Shown here: one piece after another, positions 4,271-15,670 of the stretch | How positions within the stretch are numbered: the first letter of the stretch is position 1 | Layout: each line of letters opens with the position of its first letter | DNA from: Selaginella moellendorffii | Taxonomy: Eukaryota > Plantae > Lycopodiophyta | Direction of reading: 5' to 3' | NCBI RefSeq assembly: GCF_000143415.4 | Contig: NW_003314317.1 | Coordinates: forward strand, 937,183-1,001,182 | Length of the DNA stretch: 64,000 nt | Notes under the pieces: generated by a model | What the model saw: the letters and a program-made list of their open reading frames with translations, nothing else | The model's database searches: none | What the model was told of the DNA's origin: nothing | Made by a program: the position numbers and the translations under genes

Positions 4271-5770
4271 CTATTTGGCATCTTTACCTCTGGCGAACTT
4301 GGAGCCTTTAGAGGTTTTGTTTCTTCCGGCCAGCTTGTTTTTATCCCTGGATGGCCCCTTTGTACCGCCGCCACGCCCGAATTTCTTTTTACTGTGGCCA
4401 CCATTAGCGATGTTTTGACGCTCGCGTTGGCTCTGCTGCGATGTGTTGTAGCTGCTAACAGCCTACACAAAAGCCAAGCACGCCGTGAGAGAAGTTCGCC
4501 AGGCCACGAAAGGCGAAAATCAAATCGCTCACCTTGTTCACATCAACAATCTCCTGATTGTGACGGGAGAGCACTTTGTCCAGAATCTTATCGGACTGTT
4601 GTTTCTCCTCTTTGGAGGATCCAACGACTGGAAGGAACTGTATTACACATTTTTTATGCGTTAAGAACAAAGAATAACAGAAGGGAAAAGGGAGAACAGA
4701 AATCTCACCTTTCGATGCTTTCCTGCGTGTTTTGCCGGCTTTTCACCCTCCAGCTTACGATCAAACTTGCCTACGCTGGCCGTAGCAGTACTTGCGTGTC
4801 CAGCAATCTCGCCGAGTTCATCTTTCGTGAGTTTCTTTGGAACTTGCGCGGAGCCGGTTATAGGCAAAGCCATCGTCGACAATTGGACAGTACTAATGAT
4901 CAAAACAACAATCAGACGATGTGGTTTGAGACTAATAATATTTACCTCGGGAGCGCAGATTTTCCGGCAACTTTGAGCGTGTGTTTCAAGTTCTGGAGAC
5001 GATTCTTCTCTTGCTTTTCAATGCGTGCCTTCTTTTCTTTCTTCATGTTTGAGAATGGATCTTCTCCAGGTTCTGCATAACCCAGAGAGACAAATGCGCT
5101 AAGTGAAACCAAATATGGAAACAAAAGCCACTTACCATCAGTGCTCTTGGCCTCAATTACAGGTATGTCTCGCTCATCTGCAACTCTTTTATAACCATAC
5201 CGCCTTCTCCATTCCCCAGCGTCTTCATCAAAATCTAGCTTGCTGCGTTTCCTCTTCTTTATACCTGGGGAAATAAAATAAAAATCCTTGTATACACAAA
5301 TCCAAAGAGACCACACAAGATAGATACCTTTGCTCTGTGCGAATTGCTCCCATTTCGTGGGTGGCCGCGGCTTCGGGAGCTACAAGGACAAATCCAAAAT
5401 GAATGAGAAGGAGAAAAAAGAAAGAATTTCTACTCACAGGTTTTTCTCTAGGAAGCTTTGTTGTGGGAGGAGGCAAGATCACGAGACGCCCATACTTATC
5501 CGCCTCAGAAGGCATGTTAAACAGCTTCTCTGCCAGCGCTTGAATGGCTCGAGCGCCCTTTCGGAGGCATTGCTCGTCATAATCATCGCTAGAAATCATC
5601 CACAAGAAGAAAAATGTAGCTCCATCCGAGCGAGAAGAAAATCGTCCCTACCTGGAAGTCGACGCCTCCTCGATTCCTGGATCAGTAGCGTCGAAGACGA
5701 GCAGATTGCCGATGTCCATGCGCAATCCGGACAGGGAATCCATCCCCGCGCCTTCTTCCTCGGCCGCCAT
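4271..5770 (-). CDS. RRS1: Ribosome biogenesis regulatory protein RRS1 (multi-exon)
   Basis: Spliced model [28 protein letters not shown]...[13 protein letters not shown]...[27 protein letters not shown]...[19 protein letters not shown]...KFARGKDAK*, using GT-AG introns; telo-box-like AAACCCTA just upstream. Confidence 0.92.
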
Positions 5771-5812
5771 CGCGGAAGAACTAAAACCCTAGAAACAAAA
5801 TCTCCAAGAACC

Positions 5813-6323
5813 CTAAATCTCTTTATTGCTGGATGGGTTTCTTCGAAAAATCTCTACTCCCAAATAATCTACGCTCCCTTTGACAGCAACGTGAGGCTTT
5901 CCCACTCTCACGCGAATGCTCGTCGCGGATGGAAATCTCTCAAACACGCCCTTTGCAATGCTCGCTGCCACGGCCTCCAAGAGAGAAAATGGTGGACCTT
6001 CTACCACAGCCTTGACGATCCTGGCACCAAAAAAATCGATTTTTGGGAGGAATTCTTCCAAGTTTCTACCTGTAGATCGCTCCATAGCTGATTGAATCCT
6101 CGATGTTGTCGCTGTTGCAAGCCTTGGACAAATCGGTCCACACATCCGCGTCCACCAGGAACTTTTGGCCCAATTTCTTCTCTTCGTCGTACACGCCGTG
6201 GTAGCCGTGGAAGATCATGCCACGAAGAATGAGCTTATCGCCATTTGGGTCACTGCCGCAAGAACACGCAAAAAAATTCGTTTTTTTCTGAGGGGAAAGA
6301 GATTTCCAAGCGTCATACCTCAT
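5813..6323 (-). CDS. FOLB: Dihydroneopterin aldolase (3 exons)
   Basis: ATG AG|T GAC gives MSDPNGDKLILRGMIFHGYHGVYDEEKKLGQKFLVD...ISYGAIYR|IVKAVVEGPPFSLLEAVA...RVGKPHVAVKGSVDYLGVEIFR, with the typical DHNA motifs. Confidence 0.94.
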
Positions 6324-6366
6324 CTCGTAGCACCGGGAGAACACTGCTGCTCCTTCGCCTAGGGCT

Positions 6367-7424
6367 CTAGAGCGACTTTAAGTAGGAGTTAAATGCCAAG
6401 TAAGGTGTTTTTGGTGCGTCGATCGTCCCAGTAAATCCAGGCTCGAGAACTTTTCGTTGCTCCAGATCGTATTTCTCATTGATCTTGTCCTGTGCAAGAA
6501 GTTCTCGCAATGGTGGCGGGGGCACCACTTCCGGTTTTATGATCTGGATTGCAAAAAGAAAAAGAAGTTATTTTCTGGCAAGAAAGAGGAAAGTTTTCAT
6601 CACCTTGACAGGAGGCCATTCGAAGTTTTTGAGCTGGGGGCAGTAGAGTTCTAGCCTGATCTTCTCTTTGTAAGAAGGATTAAGCGTGGTTATCACATCG
6701 CTCCAAAGCATCAGATCGACGAGCTCGTTGCATTGCTGGAGATCGAGCTCTTTCAAACCTCGAACTACAATGTGTGCTGTTTTCAAGTGGACGCATCGCG
6801 CTAGAGAGATTCTCTCGAGAGAATTCGACTGCGAAAGGTCACGCGCTGTGAGCAAAGTCTGCCGGAAAAGAACAATGAGAGAAGTTACCTCTATCAAAAC
6901 ATAGTTTAGAGCTGCACAGCACGATAAATCCAGTTCCTTGAGCGCTGGAGCAACAGTGTAAGGCGACATGACATACCTGGTCAAGAACTTGGCTCCCCGG
7001 AGCTCTAGTTTCTCCTGGAGATAGAACTTTGAGATGATCCCAGAGGACTCAAGAGGAACTTACGAGATTTGGGCGAGGAACGCTGAAGAGCTCGGTGATG
7101 AAAGGCTCGTCCACTCTGGAACTCCAGATGATAGATATCTACAACAAGAGTTGAGCTGCTAAGAACGAGGAAAGAAAAGCATAGAACTTACCAAGTTACA
7201 TGTCGCCAGCAAATTGAGACGAGTCTCGTTAAAGGCAGGCGAAACCACGGGGTCAGGAAGAGCTTCCAGCGGTCTCTCCCATTTTCCATTTCCAAGCGCC
7301 TAAGTGAAAACAAATGTGAGAAATCCATGGATCGATCAAATCGCAGTACCTTGATCCAGCCAGAGTCTGGCTTTGGTGCGGCGCCCTTCTTCTTCCCTTT
7401 GCCCTTGCCCTTCTTGGGCGCCAT
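6367..7424 (-). CDS. Uncharacterised leucine-rich-repeat protein with a basic MAPKKGKGKGKKK N-terminus (6 exons), possibly flagellar
   Basis: Exons join in frame at GT-AG sites: MAPKKGKGKGKKKGAAPKPDSGWIK|ALGNGKWERPLEALPDP..|ISIIWSSRVD..|EKLELRGAKFL..LKELDLSCCAALNYVLIE|SNSLERISLARCVHLK..LKELDLQQCNEL..|IIKPE..YLKSL* (TAG 6369-6367). Cys-containing LRRs. Confidence 0.75.
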
Positions 7425-7593
7425 AGCTGCCGCACCAAAGCTCTCGCACCGAATGGCGGGACGCAACGTTCGGATGGCCACATCCTTACCGTCAAAATTA
7501 GGGCTTGAGTCGTTTAAAATAAGTTTAACGGTTATAGATTTCCCCCAAGGGGCTTGTTCGAGCTCTCTATAGCAGCGAGATAGTAGCGTAAGC

Positions 7594-10050
7594 ACCACGT
7601 CGATGCTTGGTCTTCTCGGTGAGCTTCTTGGAATCGACCCTCAAGCCTCTCAAGGGGTCGGGTAAGGAATCGGGTTCACCGAGATCAAGGCTTCACGAAT
7701 CCAGTTCCATGCTTACGTGACGGATTGTACCTTTGAAGTTTTCGAAGTCAACCAAAGTCTTGCTCTACTGCTCCAGTCTGCTGCCGACAAAGCTCTTCTT
7801 GGTTCCTGGGATCGCATCCTCAGTTTCTAAACCTCTCGTGGTGACCCCAGCATGAACTTGTCGACCATCTTCGAATCTACAAAGGTAGTGAGCTCCATCT
7901 TCCTGTAGAGATCGAGCACCTCGTCGTACACACTATGTTGGACACAGACTGAGAGCATGGCTTTCCAAGTAACAATATCCTTCCCCTGGATTTCTTAAAA
8001 GACCTCCCTTGTGTCTTTCAGGCTACTGCCCTTCCTATGTTCAGTAGTGCTGTCCTGACAATGAGATCGTTCTCAAAGCCGTTCCCAGTGAGCTGCAAGT
8101 GAATAAGTTCCTTGCAAAGCATTCCTTTTCAGCGGTTGAGAATGGTGACAAAGGTGACGTACACTCTTGGCTTGGGGTAATTTTCCTTAAGAAAAATTAG
8201 ACCTCATGTGAGAAATTGTTCATTATATTTACATGAAAAATTATATTCAGATGATAATTTACACCACACACCTCATTCTAATCTTGAAAATGGTAAATTC
8301 ATAGATGAAAAACATGTAAATATTTATTCTTGTGTAAGGATTATTATAAATGATGATGGACGGGAAGAAAGCCATTGTAGGCTTTGTTTGAAATATTACT
8401 TTTCAAGAGATTTTATTTTATTTTTAAAGAACTAGTATGATGTAGATTGTGTTTGGCGAAGCATGTAGGAATACAGTTTCCTCATAATTCATTTTAATAC
8501 TACTTATGTCATTGAATGCTTATAAAAATGGGTGAAGTGATATATTTTGCATGGTAAATATATGTATAAATTAATGACTTTGTTATGGCTTTGGTTAATT
8601 CATTTCATAAATTATTATTTGAAGGTTTTTCTTGCAAGGAGTATTACAAGCATACTAAGGAAGTTTGCACTTCAGGAACATATCTCATTCAAGGATATAA
8701 GCCTTCTTGACAAGTTACAGATATGCTTGTAATCTGAAGAAAATCTTTCTGCTTTTTTATGCTATAAAATGCAAGTGCAACAATTCTGAAAGTTGGTATG
8801 TAGCTGATATATCTTTTATGAAGTGCAATTATGGGGATTCAGACTTTTATACAATCACATCCATGCTATGCAAAACATTTAAAGGCTATTAGCACGTATT
8901 GAAGTTGGAGAATTAGTGAGACGACATTTGATCTTTGAGCATATATCAAATCAAGCAAGAAAAATAATAAGTTACACTTCTTTATGGAAAAGAGTTGACT
9001 GAAAATGTTTTTTATGCTAGATTTACCTAGAAGTGCTTGAAGTTGAGAAAACATCTTCTAGAAGTAAAAATTTGAAATGTTAATTAGTTGGTCTTGTTAT
9101 CTTTTTAATTTCTCTAAAGAAGGAAAGACATAAGAAGCCCAATCCTTGTCCTGAGCTTTTTGAAATATATGGACCAAGGTTTATAACCTAAAGAAACATA
9201 TAAGTGACAAATTATCTTAATGTAGCAATGGTCGATGTCAAATTATGCACACAAGACAAATTAACCATATAGCTGTTTTTACTGATAAATTCTTTTGTGA
9301 CATATGCAACTAGTGACAAGTTATATAAACATGAAAAATTGCAAAACTTTATCCACACACTTCTTTTAAACTTCTACTTCATATCCATAATAAACTCCAT
9401 GAACTCTCTAGAATATACAGATTTTATTTATATAATTATTTGGACAATACATTTTTATTAAGTACACTTCCTTTAAAAGATTTATAGAGACTTTGCAATA
9501 GGAGAAATCATTCAGCAAGAATGGTATTAATGGTCAATTGTGACATTCAATCTGATGATTGTTAAAATGTGTTTACAATTTGGATGCAAGTAAATATAAC
9601 TATACAGTTTTGAGCCATCATCCCATGTGACTCCCTTCAAGAGCAAATCCAAGCCTTTTCAAAAGAATTTATCACTTTCTATAATACATTCACTAAGAAA
9701 TGTACCTGGTTTGGATTCTCCTCATTTGTGGCTATGGTGATTACTGTTAAGCTTGTTGTTGGCCTATAGCTAGGCTTTCCTTCTCCTCCAGTGTTTTTCC
9801 AACTCTGGGATCAAAAGCACAATTAAAAACCGGGGCTAAACCGTATGGTTCGGTTTAAACATATTTTGTCATGTGGTATATTTGATATATAAATATAATT
9901 TACATGCCAAGATCATAGGAAGCGTCCTGCAAAACCATCTCGTCAAACATTTTCTGCGCATTCCTATGAGATGGTTGCCCAGTAATCTGTCCTGCTCCTG
10001 CCCGCTATCATATCTTCCTGGAGAGCCTTAATAACTACTATCCGTTTCGT
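7594..10050 (-). pseudogene. Heavily deleted tandem copy of the PPR plus kinase unit, interrupted by an AT-rich insertion
   Basis: 7594-7805 matches about 11537-11876 (kinase N-terminal region, spacer and PPR end). 7810-8174 matches 12728-13158. 9906-10030 matches 13211-13395. Confidence 0.88.
8175..9905. mobile_element. AT-rich 1.7 kb insertion, probably a decayed transposon
   Basis: Homology to the PPR gene stops at 8174 and resumes at 9906. The insert is AT-rich with no long ORF; a weak EKSFSK (hAT-like ERSFS) relic lies near 9502. No clear TIR or TSD. Confidence 0.5.
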
Positions 10051-10075
10051 GTAGACAATATATTTCCCCCTTGAG

Positions 10076-11752
10076 TCACGCAAGGAGGAGATTACCTCTT
10101 TGCGTAGCTGTCGGTTTACTCGAGCTCTCTATAGCAGTGGACCCCGAGAGATAGCAGCGTATGCACTCCAGCTCCCAGCAAATCTCCTGAAAGCACTGCC
10201 TCATCTCGGGATTACTAGACCAGCACTGCTGCACCACTCCTCCCAAGAGTGTGTTTACGTATCCCGGCAGCGAAGGCCTCACTCCTGGTTTCATCCAACT
10301 CCCCTTGATCTTTTTAATATCCACTCCTCTGGTCTCGCAAAACGGTACCTCTCCAGTGAGAATGCTGTAGCACGTCATCCCAAAGCTGTAAACGTCCGCC
10401 TTGAGCGTGTACCTCGCACAAAACTCGTCACCACCACCGCGGTCTGGAACCATGACTTCCGGAGCCCTGTAGAATCCTGTGCCTCGCTTCGAAGTGTGAG
10501 CTTGGTCGGAGCACTCCACCGTCTTGGCCGTGCCAAAGTCCGCGAGCTTGAGCAAGAGGCCGCTCGGAGAAGAGCCGGGAGCCCGGGTCAAGAGGATGTT
10601 GCTCGGCTTCACGTCCCTGTGGATGATCTGGAGCGAGTGCAAGTACTTCAGGCCTCGAGCGATCTGGAGCATCATGTCGACGCAGACCAAGGCGGAGAAA
10701 GGTGGCGCAAAGCCGCTTCTTTGCTTGGACTTGTTGATGTAGGACTCAAGATTGCCAGCTTCCATGAGCTCCAGCAGCAATCCATACTTGAGGTCGCTGT
10801 CTCTCTTGAGCTCGACATGGCCGAGAACCTGGACGATGTGAGGATGCTGGAGCTGCAAGTGTAGAGCAGCCTCCCTCACAAACGATGCGTCGTCTTTGAA
10901 GAGCTTAAGAGCGTATCTCTGTCCGAAGGCTTGGACTTCTTGGACGGCGGCGTAGCTCCCACATCCCAGAACGCTTCCCATGACGAGCACTTCGTCTTCC
11001 AGCTGAGTGGAAGCCACAACAACGTCTTGCACGCAGCTAGCCGAGATTCTTGATGGGTGTAACCTCTCCAGCAACAGGTTTGTTGCCTGAAGTTGGTCTT
11101 GCGAGAGATCCGTCCTGTTACTGGCCTCGCCAAGAATTTTCACAGCTTTGAGGAAGAGGGAGGCCCGTTGCAAGAGCTTGCGGAGTGACGTCTCGGTCTC
11201 GGCTATGATTCCCGCAAAGAGCTCGGCGGAAGGAACGGCCTTCTTCTCCACCTGGATGGCATAACTGAGCATCCCCAGCTGCGTCCAAAGCCTGTAGATC
11301 TCATCCCACTTCTTACACAAAGTCTGGTTCGAGATGGCAGCAGCGATCCCAATCGCTGTGGAAGAGTCCTTGCACTCCCTTAGAAGCATCATCTCTTCGC
11401 GAAGAAGCTCCGCAGATCGATCGTGGAGAGTGTCCAGATGGCAGATGAGCTGCGATAAGTTTCTCCCCATACGCCAGTTGACCAACACTACTTTGTCCCT
11501 GTCCTTTCTACCTCCCAAGTACCTGAATAACTTGAAAGCACAACTTCGACGCTTGGTCTTCTCGGAGAGCTTCTTGGTATCGACCCTCAAGCTGCTCAGG
11601 AGGTCGGCTAAAGAATCAGGTTCACCGAGATCAAGACTCCCTGCTTCATCTTCTGCCTTCACTAATCCGGTTCCATCCTTGAGGGACGGAATGAGAGTGC
11701 CGCTCTTACCTGCTGATAACTTCGTAGATGCGGCGATAAGGCACGAGAACAT
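10076..11752 (-). CDS. Protein kinase (TKL-type) with an N-terminal helical domain resembling plant MLKL/HeLo (DUF1221-like) proteins
   Basis: Intact motifs GCGSY, YALK, FVRE, HRDVKPSNILL, LADFG, GTGFYRAPE, DVYSFG. FSALVCVDMMLQIARG and YTLKADVYSFG..ILTGEVPF resemble plant MLKL-type kinases (recalled, not searched). First ATG is at 11752. Confidence 0.85.
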   Translation of the reverse strand: MFSCLIAASTKLSAGKSGTLIPSLKDGTGLVKAEDEAGSLDLGEPDSLADLLSSLRVDTKKLSEKTKRRSCAFKLFRYLGGRKDRDKVVLVNWRMGRNLSQLICHLDTLHDRSAELLREEMMLLRECKDSSTAIGIAAAISNQTLCKKWDEIYRLWTQLGMLSYAIQVEKKAVPSAELFAGIIAETETSLRKLLQRASLFLKAVKILGEASNRTDLSQDQLQATNLLLERLHPSRISASCVQDVVVASTQLEDEVLVMGSVLGCGSYAAVQEVQAFGQRYALKLFKDDASFVREAALHLQLQHPHIVQVLGHVELKRDSDLKYGLLLELMEAGNLESYINKSKQRSGFAPPFSALVCVDMMLQIARGLKYLHSLQIIHRDVKPSNILLTRAPGSSPSGLLLKLADFGTAKTVECSDQAHTSKRGTGFYRAPEVMVPDRGGGDEFCARYTLKADVYSFGMTCYSILTGEVPFCETRGVDIKKIKGSWMKPGVRPSLPGYVNTLLGGVVQQCWSSNPEMRQCFQEICWELECIRCYLSGSTAIESSSKPTATQRGNLLLA

Positions 11753-11820
11753 TGTGCGCAATCCTTTGAAGTTCTCGCAATGCTTTGGTGTTTTCCAAAG
11801 TCAACCAGCTCGTCTAAGTC

Positions 11821-14149
11821 TTAGGCGACCAGCTCCACTGTTCCAGTCTGCTGCCGACAAAGCTCTTCTTGGTTCTCCGGTGTAGTTTCCAAAACCTGGG
11901 ACCCTTCTCGCAACGAGCTCACGCATGCGACTGTGATCTCGTTCGCTTCTACGTCGTTAGCCTGCATTTGTTCGAACAGCTCGGACGCTCTTTCCAGCTG
12001 ACCCTGCTTCACGTAAGCGTCGAGCAGAGCGTTCCAAAATGCGGTAGACTTGTCCGGAGTTCTGTCGAAGAGATTTTGTGCGTCTTCCAGAGCTCCGCAC
12101 TTGCAGTACATGCCCAGCAGCGCCTCTCTGATACCACCATCCTGATACAAATCCTTGCCTTTGATGCTCTCATGAACAGCCTTGCCCCGCTCCAACTCCT
12201 GGAGCTCCGCACAGGCCTTGAGAACGCTGATGATTGTCAGCTTGTAAGGAACCGACTGGACGTTCTGGTAGACGTCGAGAAGCTCTCGCCAGTGTCCGTG
12301 TCTCTCACAAGTTGCTATCATAGCGCTGGAGAGCAGCACATTCTTCGTTGGCACGGACTGGAAGAGCTCCCAAGCAGCATCGTAGAGACCACAGCGGCCA
12401 TACATATGGATCAGAGCGCTTCGTACGACCACGTCCGATTCAAAGCCACTCTCTTCTATGCCGGCATGAAGAAGTCTTCCCTCCGCCAGGCACTCGGCAC
12501 CATTGCATGCGCTCAAGGTGGTCGTGAAGGCAAACTTGTCAACCCGGACACCTTCTAGCCTCATGAGTCTGAAAAGCCCGAGTGCTTCTTTGCTGCGATG
12601 CCACTGTGTGTAGAAGGATATCATATGAGCCCAAGCAACGTCGTCGTATTCGCGTCTCTTCCAGAAAACCTTGGCAGCGTCTTCGAGGCTGCCACACTTT
12701 CCATACATGTTGAGCAATGCGCTGGAGACCGCATCCTCAGTTTCCAAACCTCTCGCAGTGACCACAGCATGAACCTGTCGACCATCTTCGAGAGCTGTAG
12801 CGCCGGCACACGCATTGATCACAGTGACAAAAGTGCTGACGCTTGGAGTGAGCTCCATCTTCCTGTAGAGCTCGAGCGCCTCCTCGTACGCACTATGTTG
12901 GACGTAGACCGAGAGCATTGCGTTCCAAGTGATGATATCTTTCCCCTGGATTTCTTCAAAGACCTTCCTTGCGTCTGTCAGGCTACCGCACTTCCCATAC
13001 ATGTTGAGTAGCGCAGTCTTGACGATGAGGTCGTTCTCAAACCCGTTTCCAGTGAGCTGCGAGTGAATAAGCTTGCCTTCTTGCAAAGCACTCATTTTCC
13101 CGCAGCAATTGAGGACGGTGACAAAGGTGACGTTGTCCGGCTTTACACTCTCGCCTTGCATTCTCTGGAACAGCTTCAATGCCGTCTTGTAGTGACCACG
13201 CTCTGAGTAGGCCGAGATCATAGAAGTCCAAAGAATAGCGTCCCGCGAAACCATCTCGTCAAACATTCTCTGCGCGTCCCTTAAGCTCCCACACTTGAGA
13301 TACATCTCTATGAGATGGTTCCCGAGTATCCTGTCCTGCTCCTGCCCGCTATCCCGAATGTAGCTGTGAATTTTCTTCCCTTGCTGGAGAGCCTTGTTCT
13401 TAGCGCAAACTCGTAAAACTCTAGCGTAAGTGGCACTGTCTGTCTTGTGTATCATCCCTTGCATGCGATCCACTAGAATCTTCAAGTTGTCCTCGTCGGG
13501 ACTCCTGGCAGCACTGTTCTTGTACCCGAAAGCGGCACACGATACTTTGCTACCGTGGTGTTGTCCTCGAAGCGTTTGTGTTTTGTCTCGCCAATCTGGA
13601 TAAGAAACCAAGAACTTGTAACGCTCTGAAAGTCCAGGATGAAAAGAAGTTTAAAAAACTCTCTAGCGCACTCACACAAAAATGCCATCCTTGACGATAC
13701 AAAACATCCAAATCTCCAGACTAAAGATCAAGCATTGGCAGGGAAATTTTTTTCTAGAACGTAAACGCTAAAAGATCTAGGAAAAGGATCGAAACTAGAA
13801 AATATGCCTACACAATTGAATCGGATTCACGAGAAAACATCGAAGAACATACAAAACATCCAAATTTTCAGACGAAAGATCAAGCATTAAGGGGAAAAAA
13901 AATTCTAGAACGTAAAGATCTAGGAAAAGGATCGAGACTAGAAACAATGCCTACACGATTGAATCGGATTCACGAGAAAACATTGAACGATCGAACTACA
14001 AAACGATTGAAAGCAAAGAAAAGAATGCCGCGCAAGAAGAATCTCTCAAGACAGGACATGATCAAGGATAGCATAAGCAACATACCTAGATTTCTTCGCT
14101 TCCTCCTGTGCGCGATCGCCATCGCCATAGACGAGAGCGCGGCCGCCAT
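11821..14149 (-). CDS. PLS-class pentatricopeptide repeat protein with no E/DYW domain (2 exons: 14149-14086 and 13625-11821)
   Basis: Repeated P-L-S motifs (ALLNMYGKCGSLxDARKVFE, DIITWNAML, PDNVTFVTVLNCC). Exon 1 MAAALSSMAMAIAHRRKRRNL joins in frame (G|AG CGT TAC) at ttcag 13626 and looks like a targeting peptide. Confidence 0.9.
13697..13987. repeat. Tandem duplication of about 145 bp inside the PPR intron
   Basis: atacaaaacatccaaat...aaagatcaagcatt...aagatctaggaaaaggatcga...tgcctacac.attgaatcggattcacgagaaaacat occurs twice. Confidence 0.9.
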
Positions 14150-14440
14150 AGCCAAGCTCTCACAGATATTTTCGTGGGCTTTGCTTTGGAAAAATTTAAG
14201 CCTAGGCGGGAAAGGCTTGGTCTAAATGACAACTGTCCTTGGAACACGTGTCCTTAAACCTCCTCTCTTTTTAAAATACCCATTAGGGTTCTTCGCTCTG
14301 CTTGATCATCACGGTATTTCTAGCGACATTTCTCTCGGAGGCAAGATCCTAGCTATTCGAGGTAAGATTTACCGCCTGGCAGTGGCATTTTCTTAGCGAC
14401 CGATCGTTTTCTTGCTGCTAGCAGCTTGGCGCTCACTCTC

Positions 14441-15670
14441 ATGGCGCTGGTCTTGATCTTCTTGCTCGCGATCCGGATATTTCCTGCTACCAGGGCATCG
14501 ACGCTCTCGTCGGATCTCCAAGCCCTCAAGGATGTCAAGGCCGCGGTAGATCCCTCCAGCATTCACTCCACGACCTGTCTCGGCTCCTGGGACTTCGCCG
14601 CCGCCGATCCCTGCGACTCGCGATCCACATCGCATTTCGTGTGTGGCATTGGCTGTAGCAGCGACGATCCTCTCAGCCGCCGCGTCATCAGCTTGATCCT
14701 CGACGGCTCCGGCTACAATGGTACCCTCTCTCCATCGCTGGGCAGCTTGACCGCGTTACAGGTGCTCGATTTCTCTGGAAATTCCTTTCACGGCACCATT
14801 CCAGCGTCCCTGGGCCAGCTGACTAGCCTCATCAAGCTCGACCTGTCAAGGAACTCTTTCACCGGCGCGATTCCAGACACCATCTCACAGCTCTCGAATC
14901 TATCCTACCTCTCCGTCGCCAACAATCACCTCGAGGGGCCGATTCCCAGCTCCATCGCCAATCTATCAACCATCGAGAGGCTCTTCCTCCACAACAACCA
15001 GCTCGCCGGAAAGATTCCCTCGCTAGATGGTTTGCAGAGGCTGAGCTACTTCGACGCTAGCAACAACCGGCTGTCCGAGCTGCCGCTCAAGCTCCCGGTT
15101 TCGCTGCTCCAACTTTCGCTGCGAAGCAACCAACTGGGTGGGAGCTTTCCACAGAATCTAGTCCAGCTCCAGGGGCTGGAAGTTCTGGACCTGAGCTACA
15201 ACCAGTTCGTCGGGCACCTGGATTCGTCGCTGTTCGAATTGCCATCTCTCCAGCAGCTCACGGTCTCGCACAACCAGATCTCTTCGCTGGGTGTTCCACG
15301 ACTTTCCAACGTGGAGAGCGAGCTTGTGGCGGTGGACATAAGTTACAACCAGCTCGAAGGTGCTCTGCCCGTGTTCTTGGCAAACATCAGCAGGCTCTCG
15401 GCACTCTCGCTTCGCTACAACAACTTCAGTGGCACCATCCCTTACGAGTTCGCTTCCAAGGCGAGCTCGGCTTCCAACGAGGTCCAGCCGCTCATGCGCT
15501 TGTTCCTGGACGGCAACTATCTCATCGGCGAGGTTCCTCAGCCATTTCTCGAGGTTCCGGGAAGGTTTAGCGCGAGTTTTATCTACAACTGCCTGGCCAA
15601 GTGCCCGGAGAGCTTTGCGTTTTGCCAAGGAGGTGGACAGAGGCCAAAGTCGGAGTGCCCGACTCTGTGA
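14441..15670 (+). CDS. Secreted extracellular LRR protein with no transmembrane or kinase domain
   Basis: Signal peptide MALVLIFLLAIRIFPATRA, LRRNT (DLQALK..SWDF..DPC), about 10 plant LxxLxLxxNxLxGxIP repeats, Cys-rich C-terminal cap. Confidence 0.93.
   Translation: MALVLIFLLAIRIFPATRASTLSSDLQALKDVKAAVDPSSIHSTTCLGSWDFAAADPCDSRSTSHFVCGIGCSSDDPLSRRVISLILDGSGYNGTLSPSLGSLTALQVLDFSGNSFHGTIPASLGQLTSLIKLDLSRNSFTGAIPDTISQLSNLSYLSVANNHLEGPIPSSIANLSTIERLFLHNNQLAGKIPSLDGLQRLSYFDASNNRLSELPLKLPVSLLQLSLRSNQLGGSFPQNLVQLQGLEVLDLSYNQFVGHLDSSLFELPSLQQLTVSHNQISSLGVPRLSNVESELVAVDISYNQLEGALPVFLANISRLSALSLRYNNFSGTIPYEFASKASSASNEVQPLMRLFLDGNYLIGEVPQPFLEVPGRFSASFIYNCLAKCPESFAFCQGGGQRPKSECPTL

Follow-up and report, generated by a model that had tools for sequence, protein, structure and literature searches.

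Separate PPR and MLKL-related kinase genes lie 68 nt apart, probably on a shared RNA, in Selaginella moellendorffii

In the 64,000-nt stretch of Selaginella moellendorffii DNA analyzed here (the window), a PPR and a protein kinase open reading frame (ORF) both lie on the minus strand, with the PPR ORF upstream. The NCBI annotation has separate models for the PPR protein (612 amino acids) and the kinase (558 amino acids) on both haplotype scaffolds. The PPR ORF itself spans 13611..11821, and the actual coding sequence (CDS) consists of exon 1 (14149-14086) and exon 2 (13595-11821). An earlier note on this DNA had described a PLS-type PPR ORF that ends at TAA 11823-11821 without E or DYW domains, followed 68 bp later on the same strand by a kinase ORF starting at ATG 11752. 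Both positions proved exact to the base. The features are as follows.

14150..14196 (-), 5' UTR of the PPR transcript; the RNA contig starts at 14183-14196
14086..14149 (-), PPR exon 1 CDS, 21 codons plus 1 nt
13596..14085 (-), PPR intron, 490 nt, GT..AG; absent from the RNA contigs in each of the four runs
11821..13595 (-), PPR exon 2 CDS including TAA (11823-11821), with PLS-type triplets of 35/35/31 residues
11824..11892 (-), C-terminal non-PPR tail of the PPR protein, 23 residues; homology ends at residue ~589
11753..11820 (-), spacer from the PPR stop to the kinase ATG, 68 nt
10076..11752 (-), kinase CDS, from ATG 11752 to TGA 10078-10076, 558 amino acids
10988..11752 (-), N-terminal region of the kinase, residues 1-255
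11657..11709 (-), hypothetical 53-nt intron of the earlier note; retained in all RNA contigs covering the segment
10145..10987 (-), protein kinase domain, residues 256-536
9860..10075 (-), 3' UTR in haplotype 1; contig ends fall at 9853-9888, with zero depth below 9748
9921..10009 (-), decayed tandem copy, piece 1; an 88-89% copy of PPR 13353-13237 in which 28 nt are deleted
7806..8160 (-), decayed tandem copy, piece 2; a 75% copy of PPR 13133-12722
7558..7805 (-), decayed tandem copy, junction part; colinear with the live junction, with several deletions

The PPR intron carries an internal direct repeat of 143-152 nt, and a piece of PPR motif 1 lies within the 3' UTR. The spacer contains no ATG; it contains a TGA at 11803-11801 that closes the kinase frame upstream. 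RNA contigs of a divergent LRR gene start at 14438. In a neighboring LRR-FolB-RRS1 run the coding sequences are separated by only 43 and 42 nt, and same-strand gaps of 42-68 nt recur within the same 13.7 kb. An Rfam search of positions 9000-15000 revealed no hidden RNA gene.

The PPR protein gave strong Pfam matches (PPR_2, E 1e-60; PPR, E 1e-54), and tandem P, L and S motifs with a 35/35/31 periodicity can be read from its translation. The array is broken off in the middle of a motif at ~11893, and homology to other PLS proteins ends at residue ~589 of 612. The protein therefore lacks an E or DYW editing domain, in agreement with the Pfam search, which gave no match to E1, E2 or DYW (PF20431, PF20430, PF14432), and it would be unable to deaminate on its own. 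In its P/L/S triplets, its Pfam matches and its presequence-like N-terminus it resembles the PLS-E-DYW editing factors, from which it differs by an array that ends inside a motif and by the lack of E1, E2 and DYW. Its nearest relatives, at 36-40% identity, do bear E and DYW domains (e.g., P0137 and P0132). No close orthologue was found among 120 PPR relatives, the best non-self match being 40% identical. Exon 1 encodes many Ala, Ser and Arg residues and no acidic one and is transit-peptide-like; this composition hints at an organelle presequence.

The kinase is annotated as 'light-sensor Protein kinase-like' (allele XP_024526443.1). Pfam Pkinase matches residues 259-525, and the AF2 model of the domain has a pLDDT of ~90. 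All catalytic residues are present, namely, K283, E294, H378-R-D380, N385, D405-F-G (405-407) and A430-P-E (430-432), so that the kinase is catalytically intact and predicted to be active. No close orthologue was found for it either, and the best non-self matches are 33-36% identical. Its relatives are bryophyte (moss) MLKL_N-kinase proteins and plant MLKL pseudokinases. Residues 145-536 align at 30% identity with the DUF1221 MLKL P0014, which has HGE and GFG where the spikemoss kinase has HRD and DFG.

The plant MLKLs (AtMLKL1-3; 6LBA, 6KA4; Mahdi et al., bioRxiv 10.1101/681015) resemble the spikemoss kinase in the kinase domain and the stretch that precedes it, including a region of ~200 residues predicted to be helical. 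They are pseudokinases, whereas the spikemoss protein keeps HRD, DFG and the lysine K283. They also carry a serine-rich extension after the kinase domain, which is absent from the spikemoss protein, as it terminates 22 residues past that domain. The third difference is in the N-terminus, which in plant MLKLs is a HeLo region. Residues 1-255 of the spikemoss kinase are predicted to be all helical, with low confidence (AF2 pLDDT 30-60; ~200 helical residues before the kinase domain), and had no significant match in Pfam, including MLKL_N and DUF1221, or in a PDB sequence search. In profile comparisons with hhalign, the DUF1221 set reached an E value of 0.27, the moss MLKL_N set one of 0.65 and the N-termini of relatives one of 0.16. 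Searches with the ESM Atlas and with the AF2 model in Foldseek returned kinase-domain matches only, or nothing significant. Only collinear motif traces can be seen (C70-, C127- and L226-type positions). The N-termini of the nearest single-kinase relatives, for their part, align with the MLKL HeLo profile at an hhalign probability of 97%. Relatives carry MLKL_N or DUF1221, and the description of this kinase's own N-terminal region as HeLo-like was not confirmed.

Both ORFs are under purifying selection between the haplotypes, at a dN/dS of ~0.22: 0.23 for the PPR gene (p 2e-3) and 0.22 for the kinase gene (binomial p 1.3e-5).

The earlier note proposed that a single stop codon separates this locus from a PPR-kinase fusion, with the kinase at the position of the editing domain. 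That position is correct in the genomic sense only, the PPR array being cut within a motif. The geometry described for the fusion was also correct: the PPR frame is open for 51 codons past the TAA, a CAG/GTAAGA donor lies at 11712-11710/11709, and excision of 11709-11657 joins the PPR and kinase frames at AEDEAG. A fusion protein would then be made by read-through of the stop together with removal of the 53 nt, or by other recoding. The open frame speaks for it, as do the good donor context of the GT at 11709, the length of the segment, which is a usual intron size here, the joining of the frames, and the allelic indels of the spacer (6 nt and 24 nt), which are multiples of three. Nevertheless, the chance probability of the open frame is 0.086, which makes it unremarkable, and two indels would both be multiples of three by chance about 1 time in 9.

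Both assembled haplotypes have the stop codon itself, as do the RNA contigs from each of the four runs, including RNA of a third accession. The contigs form a bubble at 11738-11871 that represents two expressed alleles. One is exactly haplotype 1, and the other is haplotype 2, with 3 substitutions and a 6-nt deletion (11773-11768) that shortens its spacer to 62 nt. In run X16, a 24-nt duplication repeats the stop region, and the TAA is even duplicated. The presence of the TAA in both haplotype scaffolds and both expressed alleles rules out a sequencing or assembly error, and no allele seen has a sense codon in its place. The only GT..AG joint in the RNA contigs of the four runs is 14085-13596; none occurs at 11709-11657, where each run retains the 53 nt at full depth. 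Fusion by splicing is thus ruled out as far as contigs can tell, as these lose rare isoforms and a minor spliced form could escape detection. Fusion by a -1 or +1 frameshift is ruled out by TGA 11803-11801, which lies in the kinase frame beyond the PPR stop and which a -1 shift ahead of the stop would meet.

No protein combining PPR motifs and a kinase was found among about 270 kinase relatives (120+150) and 120 PPR relatives, with phmmer cross-checks. A literature search found no report of a PPR-kinase fusion or of nuclear polycistrons in Selaginella. We consider a fusion protein highly improbable and this reading close to refuted: two ORFs are maintained, all alleles seen carry the stop, and the genes are not expressed as a fusion.

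We analyzed RNA coverage in Logan assembled contigs from four runs of four studies (X1, X3, X6 and X16), which were taken as RNA by inference from the removal of the PPR intron. The depth of that intron was ~0-11, indicating that carry-over of DNA or pre-mRNA is low. The contigs are continuous from ~14195 to ~9860 across both genes, and those covering 9880-11767, 11738-11871 and 11842-13595+14086-14194 are joined by overlaps of k-1. Over the spacer, the contigs of the two alleles had summed local depths of 42.9, 74 and 120.6, compared with 36.2/36.9, 50.9/63.4 and 123.8/86 for their flanks. Spacer depth is therefore not below that of the flanking contigs, with no drop over the spacer. Both alleles were coexpressed at similar depth, and the ratio of kinase to PPR depth was 0.8-1.4 across the four studies. 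The continuity of the contigs and the undiminished depth of the spacer indicate that the main RNA is probably dicistronic or a read-through product, which agrees with the second half of the earlier proposal that the locus is either fused or bicistronic. Contigs cannot prove that one molecule spans both ORFs, nor can they locate the starts and ends of RNAs, and two overlapping transcripts would yield the same contig graph.

We searched the window for a second copy of the pair, including by tblastn with the joined two-exon 612-amino-acid PPR protein (database entry P0123). In the junction part of the decayed copy, a PPR tail (7805-7762, 95%) is followed by a remnant of the spacer and then by the N-terminus (7692-7590, 87%) and the C-terminal end (7595-7558) of the kinase. 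Judged from these alignments, the downstream copy retains the PPR-to-kinase junction, which would predate the duplication.

Taken together, our preferred reading, to which we give a probability of about 0.6, is that two separate genes were set head to tail by a past rearrangement and share one dicistronic or read-through RNA. The pair would be transcribed from the PPR promoter at ~14196 as a single spliced RNA of ~3.8 kb ending at ~9860, and the adjacency would reflect the very tight gene packing of the S. moellendorffii genome rather than a PPR-kinase signaling device. It is also possible, though we think it somewhat unlikely, that the genes are monocistronic with overlapping transcripts that were merged by short-read assembly. 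The start site of the kinase RNA would then lie in the spacer or within the final 100-200 nt of the PPR ORF, and the PPR mRNA would be polyadenylated inside the kinase ORF. Given the 36 AUGs upstream of its own, this is the sole route to normal cap-dependent translation of the kinase. Spacer depth slightly above the flanks in X1 and X3 is what an overlap would give, and kinase depth is ~1.4 times PPR depth in X6 and X16. On the other hand, no contig end, cluster of loose ends or depth step was found at the spacer in any of the four runs, the 400 nt past the PPR stop contain neither an AATAAA-like signal nor an AT-rich stretch, and the kinase-to-PPR depth ratio stays within the range given above in all four studies.

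A co-regulated functional unit, in which selection keeps two separate proteins on one RNA, the kinase for instance modifying or reporting on the PPR protein, appears quite improbable. The junction was duplicated as a unit and is older than the duplication, both genes are under purifying selection, and the two alleles are expressed together at similar depth, all of which would fit such a unit. Yet a tandem duplication copies anything that is adjacent, and the second copy has decayed. Neither an orthologous pair nor a fusion was found elsewhere in the relatives searched, and unrelated pairs next door are equally tight. Moreover, only the PPR protein has a presequence-like N-terminus, and from sequence the two would be expected in different compartments. 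The idea of an RNA reader coupled to a kinase or cell death executor thus found no support at this locus.

The shared RNA of our preferred reading bears on how the kinase is translated. ORF 1 (PPR) is 1,839 nt long and follows a 5' UTR of ~45 nt, and its AUG is flanked by G at -3 and +4. Because of this 1.8-kb ORF, its strong start context and the 35 further AUGs, the kinase would be unreachable by leaky scanning. In green-algal bicistronic mRNAs, the median distance between ORFs is 40-183 nt (Gallaher et al. 2021, PMC7896298; leaky-scanning study PMC11892635), and ORF 1 has a median length of 291-357 nt and starts in a weak context, with few AUGs ahead of ORF 2 (PMC7896298, PMC11892635). The spikemoss pair is similar in its short gap, its short 5' UTR and the selection on both ORFs. 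It differs in the length and strong start context of ORF 1 and in the number of AUGs before ORF 2, so that the algal mechanism cannot apply to it.

In Arabidopsis, read-through polycistronic transcripts have been described at 271 loci (Kurihara et al. 2022, PMC9768141). These forms are minor, degraded by NMD and often made by intergenic splicing, and poor translation of the second ORF is expected from the long RNA (PMC9768141). Similarly, continuous RNA cover extends over two same-strand nuclear genes at our locus, with a long stretch past the first stop. In contrast, the spikemoss spacer is as deep as both genes, there is no intergenic splice, and the gap is only 68 nt. The kinase would most likely be translated from a minor, shorter RNA starting inside or just after the PPR ORF, other routes being inefficient internal initiation or reinitiation. 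It is improbable that the locus makes a land-plant dicistronic mRNA whose second cistron, after a full-length first one of 612 codons, is translated efficiently by a route such as internal entry or long-range reinitiation. Production of an organelle RNA-binding protein would in that case be tied to that of an active MLKL-type kinase, and the locus would exemplify a nuclear polycistrony that is widespread in Selaginella.

In summary, neither a new protein architecture nor an RNA-sensing kinase is present at the locus, which consists of two annotated genes very close together. The kinase comes from a lycophyte, is related to the plant MLKL pseudokinases and is itself catalytically intact, and it may be of some use for tracing the origin of that family. 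The value of the locus lies in a well-documented same-strand pair that has continuous RNA cover and too little room between its genes for a terminator and a promoter. If a single molecule does carry both ORFs, translation past a first ORF of 1.8 kb would call for a mechanism unlike the algal one. Should long reads show that pairs of this kind are carried on single molecules, nuclear polycistrons would be frequent in Selaginella, a land plant.

The PPR gene and the kinase gene lie head to tail on the minus strand of the window, which is part of S. moellendorffii scaffold GL377621.1 (haplotype 1, assembly GCA_000143415.2). The observation of a PPR ORF without E/DYW, followed 68 nt on by a same-strand kinase ORF, was confirmed by coordinates and by Pfam.

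14149-14086 and 13595-11821, minus strand: PPR CDS (exons 1 and 2), 612 aa, same as the NCBI model
14085-13596, minus strand: PPR intron, 490 nt, GT..AG, spliced out in RNA contigs of 4/4 public runs
13611-11821, minus strand: PPR ORF, ending with TAA 11823-11821
11820-11753, minus strand: spacer from PPR stop to kinase ATG, 68 nt
11752 (ATG) to 10078-10076 (TGA), minus strand: kinase ORF, 558 aa, protein kinase domain at residues 259-525

Removal of the intron from the RNA contigs establishes the two-exon CDS. Pfam returned strong PPR matches for its product (PPR_2, E 1e-60) and found neither an E nor a DYW domain in it, and PLS-class spacing (35/35/31 residues) was visible in the translation. 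Similarity to other PLS proteins ended mid-motif at residue ~589 (window ~11893), and the final 23 residues were unrelated to them. E and DYW domains are present further on in relatives at 36-40% identity. The PPR gene is thus a PLS gene that was cut short and joined to foreign sequence. The intron contains a direct repeat of ~143-152 nt at 13686-13987 (74-nt and 51-nt cores, 84-93% identity). Upstream, the ~240 nt at 14197-14437, between the 5' ends of the RNA contigs of the PPR gene and of a divergent plus-strand LRR gene (409 aa), are a compact bidirectional promoter region.

Between haplotypes, non-synonymous changes numbered 15 in the kinase, against 20 synonymous ones (dN/dS 0.22, binomial p 1.3e-5), and 9.5 against 11.5 in the PPR gene (dN/dS 0.23, p 2e-3). 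Both genes are thus alive. The kinase carries the catalytic residues K283, E294, HRD 378-380, N385, DFG 405-407 and APE 430-432, and the AF2 model of its kinase domain was confident and resembled solved kinase structures. Its nearest relatives were moss MLKL_N plus tandem-kinase proteins (among them P0250; MLKL_N 33.6 bits versus a cut-off of 27) and angiosperm DUF1221 proteins, whose N-termini are the plant MLKLs of structures 6LBA and 6KA4. The earlier label of MLKL/HeLo-like kinase suits the relatives, the nearest single-kinase ones having N-termini that match the profile of MLKL HeLo (probability 97%, E 4e-11), but is not confirmed for the protein's own residues 1-255, which gave no Pfam hit, no PDB or Atlas lead and no significant hhalign match (E 0.27, 0.65 and 0.16). 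The AF2 model of this region was helical, with low confidence. Plant MLKLs carry a serine-rich tail and their kinase domains are pseudokinases (bioRxiv 10.1101/681015), whereas the Selaginella kinase has no such tail and is not a pseudokinase. It is best regarded as a divergent, catalytically intact kinase related to the MLKL family rather than as one of its members.

Transcription was followed in contigs from four public runs (X1, X3, X6 and X16, the last filed under another organism label). Their RNA nature, guessed beforehand, was confirmed by the near absence of the intron (depth 0-11 versus 31-124 in exons), so that DNA carry-over must be small. Contigs overlapped by k-1 all the way from 14183-14196 to 9853-9888, with breaks at allelic bubbles only, and depth was zero below 9748. 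Spacer depth, summed over two alleles from short bubble contigs, was 42.9 (X1), 74 (X3) and 120.6 (X6), not under the flanking contigs (36.2/36.9, 50.9/63.4 and 123.8/86, respectively), and the kinase/PPR depth ratio was 0.8-1.4 in the four studies. Downstream of the PPR stop, neither a poly(A)-like hexamer nor an AT-rich stretch was found, and Rfam had no match in 9000-15000. This cover is as expected of one ~3.8-kb spliced RNA with both ORFs; two overlapping transcripts would give an identical graph, contigs being unable to reveal RNA starts, ends or single molecules. Of the proposal that the locus is fused or bicistronic, the second part thus survives as a co-transcription that is probable but unproven.

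The fusion part was rejected. The earlier note had placed the locus one stop codon from a fusion, and its coordinates, open post-stop frame, GT at 11709 and 53-nt arithmetic were all correct; the PPR frame stays open for 51 codons past the stop (chance probability 0.086). Haplotype 2 (scaffold GL377571.1) shares both gene models and the TAA, with a spacer of 62 nt (6-nt deletion at 11773-11768). The RNA contigs form an allelic bubble at 11738-11871, one form being identical to haplotype 1 and the other differing from it by precisely the haplotype 2 changes, three substitutions and the 6-nt deletion; the stop is therefore kept in both expressed alleles. In X16 (~98% identical), a 24-nt duplication at 11803 repeats the PPR stop region. 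Removal of the proposed 53-nt intron found no counterpart in RNA: contig 9880-11767 was unbroken in 4/4 runs, and no splice joint at 11709-11657 was reported in any. The kinase frame is shut by TGA 11803-11801, 3' of the PPR stop, so a frameshift before the stop cannot reach the kinase. The combined architecture was absent from relatives, with no PPR repeats in ~270 nearest kinase relatives and no kinase in 120 nearest PPR relatives. Literature searches found no description of a PPR-kinase fusion or of nuclear polycistrons in Selaginella.

Upstream of the kinase start codon the spliced RNA contains 36 AUGs, and G occupies both -3 and +4 around the PPR start codon. Ribosomes are unlikely to reinitiate once they have translated 612 codons. 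Production of the kinase probably relies on a shorter, minor RNA or on internal initiation of low efficiency. Arabidopsis read-through transcripts (PMC9768141) and green-algal polycistrons (PMC7896298; PMC11892635) serve as known comparators. Algal bicistronic mRNAs use leaky scanning, in which ribosomes bypass an ORF 1 that is short, has few AUGs and initiates weakly (PMC11892635), a mechanism inapplicable to the kinase because of those many upstream AUGs and the strong PPR AUG context.

Pieces of a second, decayed tandem copy follow downstream, in colinear order with the live unit.

10009-9921: PPR piece
8160-7806: PPR piece
7805-7762: PPR tail (95%)
7692-7590: kinase N-terminus (87%)
7595-7558: kinase end

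In alignment, the junction of PPR tail, spacer and kinase start is common to both copies, with deletions, and therefore predates the duplication. Haplotype 2 lacks ~860 nt directly after the kinase stop (window ~10030-9172, including the haplotype-1 3' UTR and the PPR motif-1 fragment) and a 350-nt PPR fragment (window 8160-7811; compared with 7678-8840 of L003, the haplotype 2 place), so the two alleles must have different 3' UTRs. An AT-rich block at 8001-10000 (GC 0.32 versus ~0.5 around), between pieces of the decayed copy and without RNA cover below 9748, may be an insertion. X16 also yielded an expressed contig (depth 24.9) with joints 10072->13420, 12791->13370 and 11904->12733, in which the kinase end and the next 33 nt lead into PPR pieces with extensive deletions; such a contig would represent a further rearranged copy, missing from the assembly.

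Three further same-strand genes, LRR-like (256 aa), FolB and RRS1, occupy window 4271-7424 (10329-13482 of L001, the haplotype 1 place) with 43 and 42 nt between consecutive CDSs; they sit within the same 13.7 kb as the PPR-kinase pair and are packed equally tightly. The suggested functional coupling of an RNA reader to a kinase/executor is unsupported. What the locus holds is two ordinary annotated genes, and their arrangement, unusually tight, is found repeatedly in this genome.
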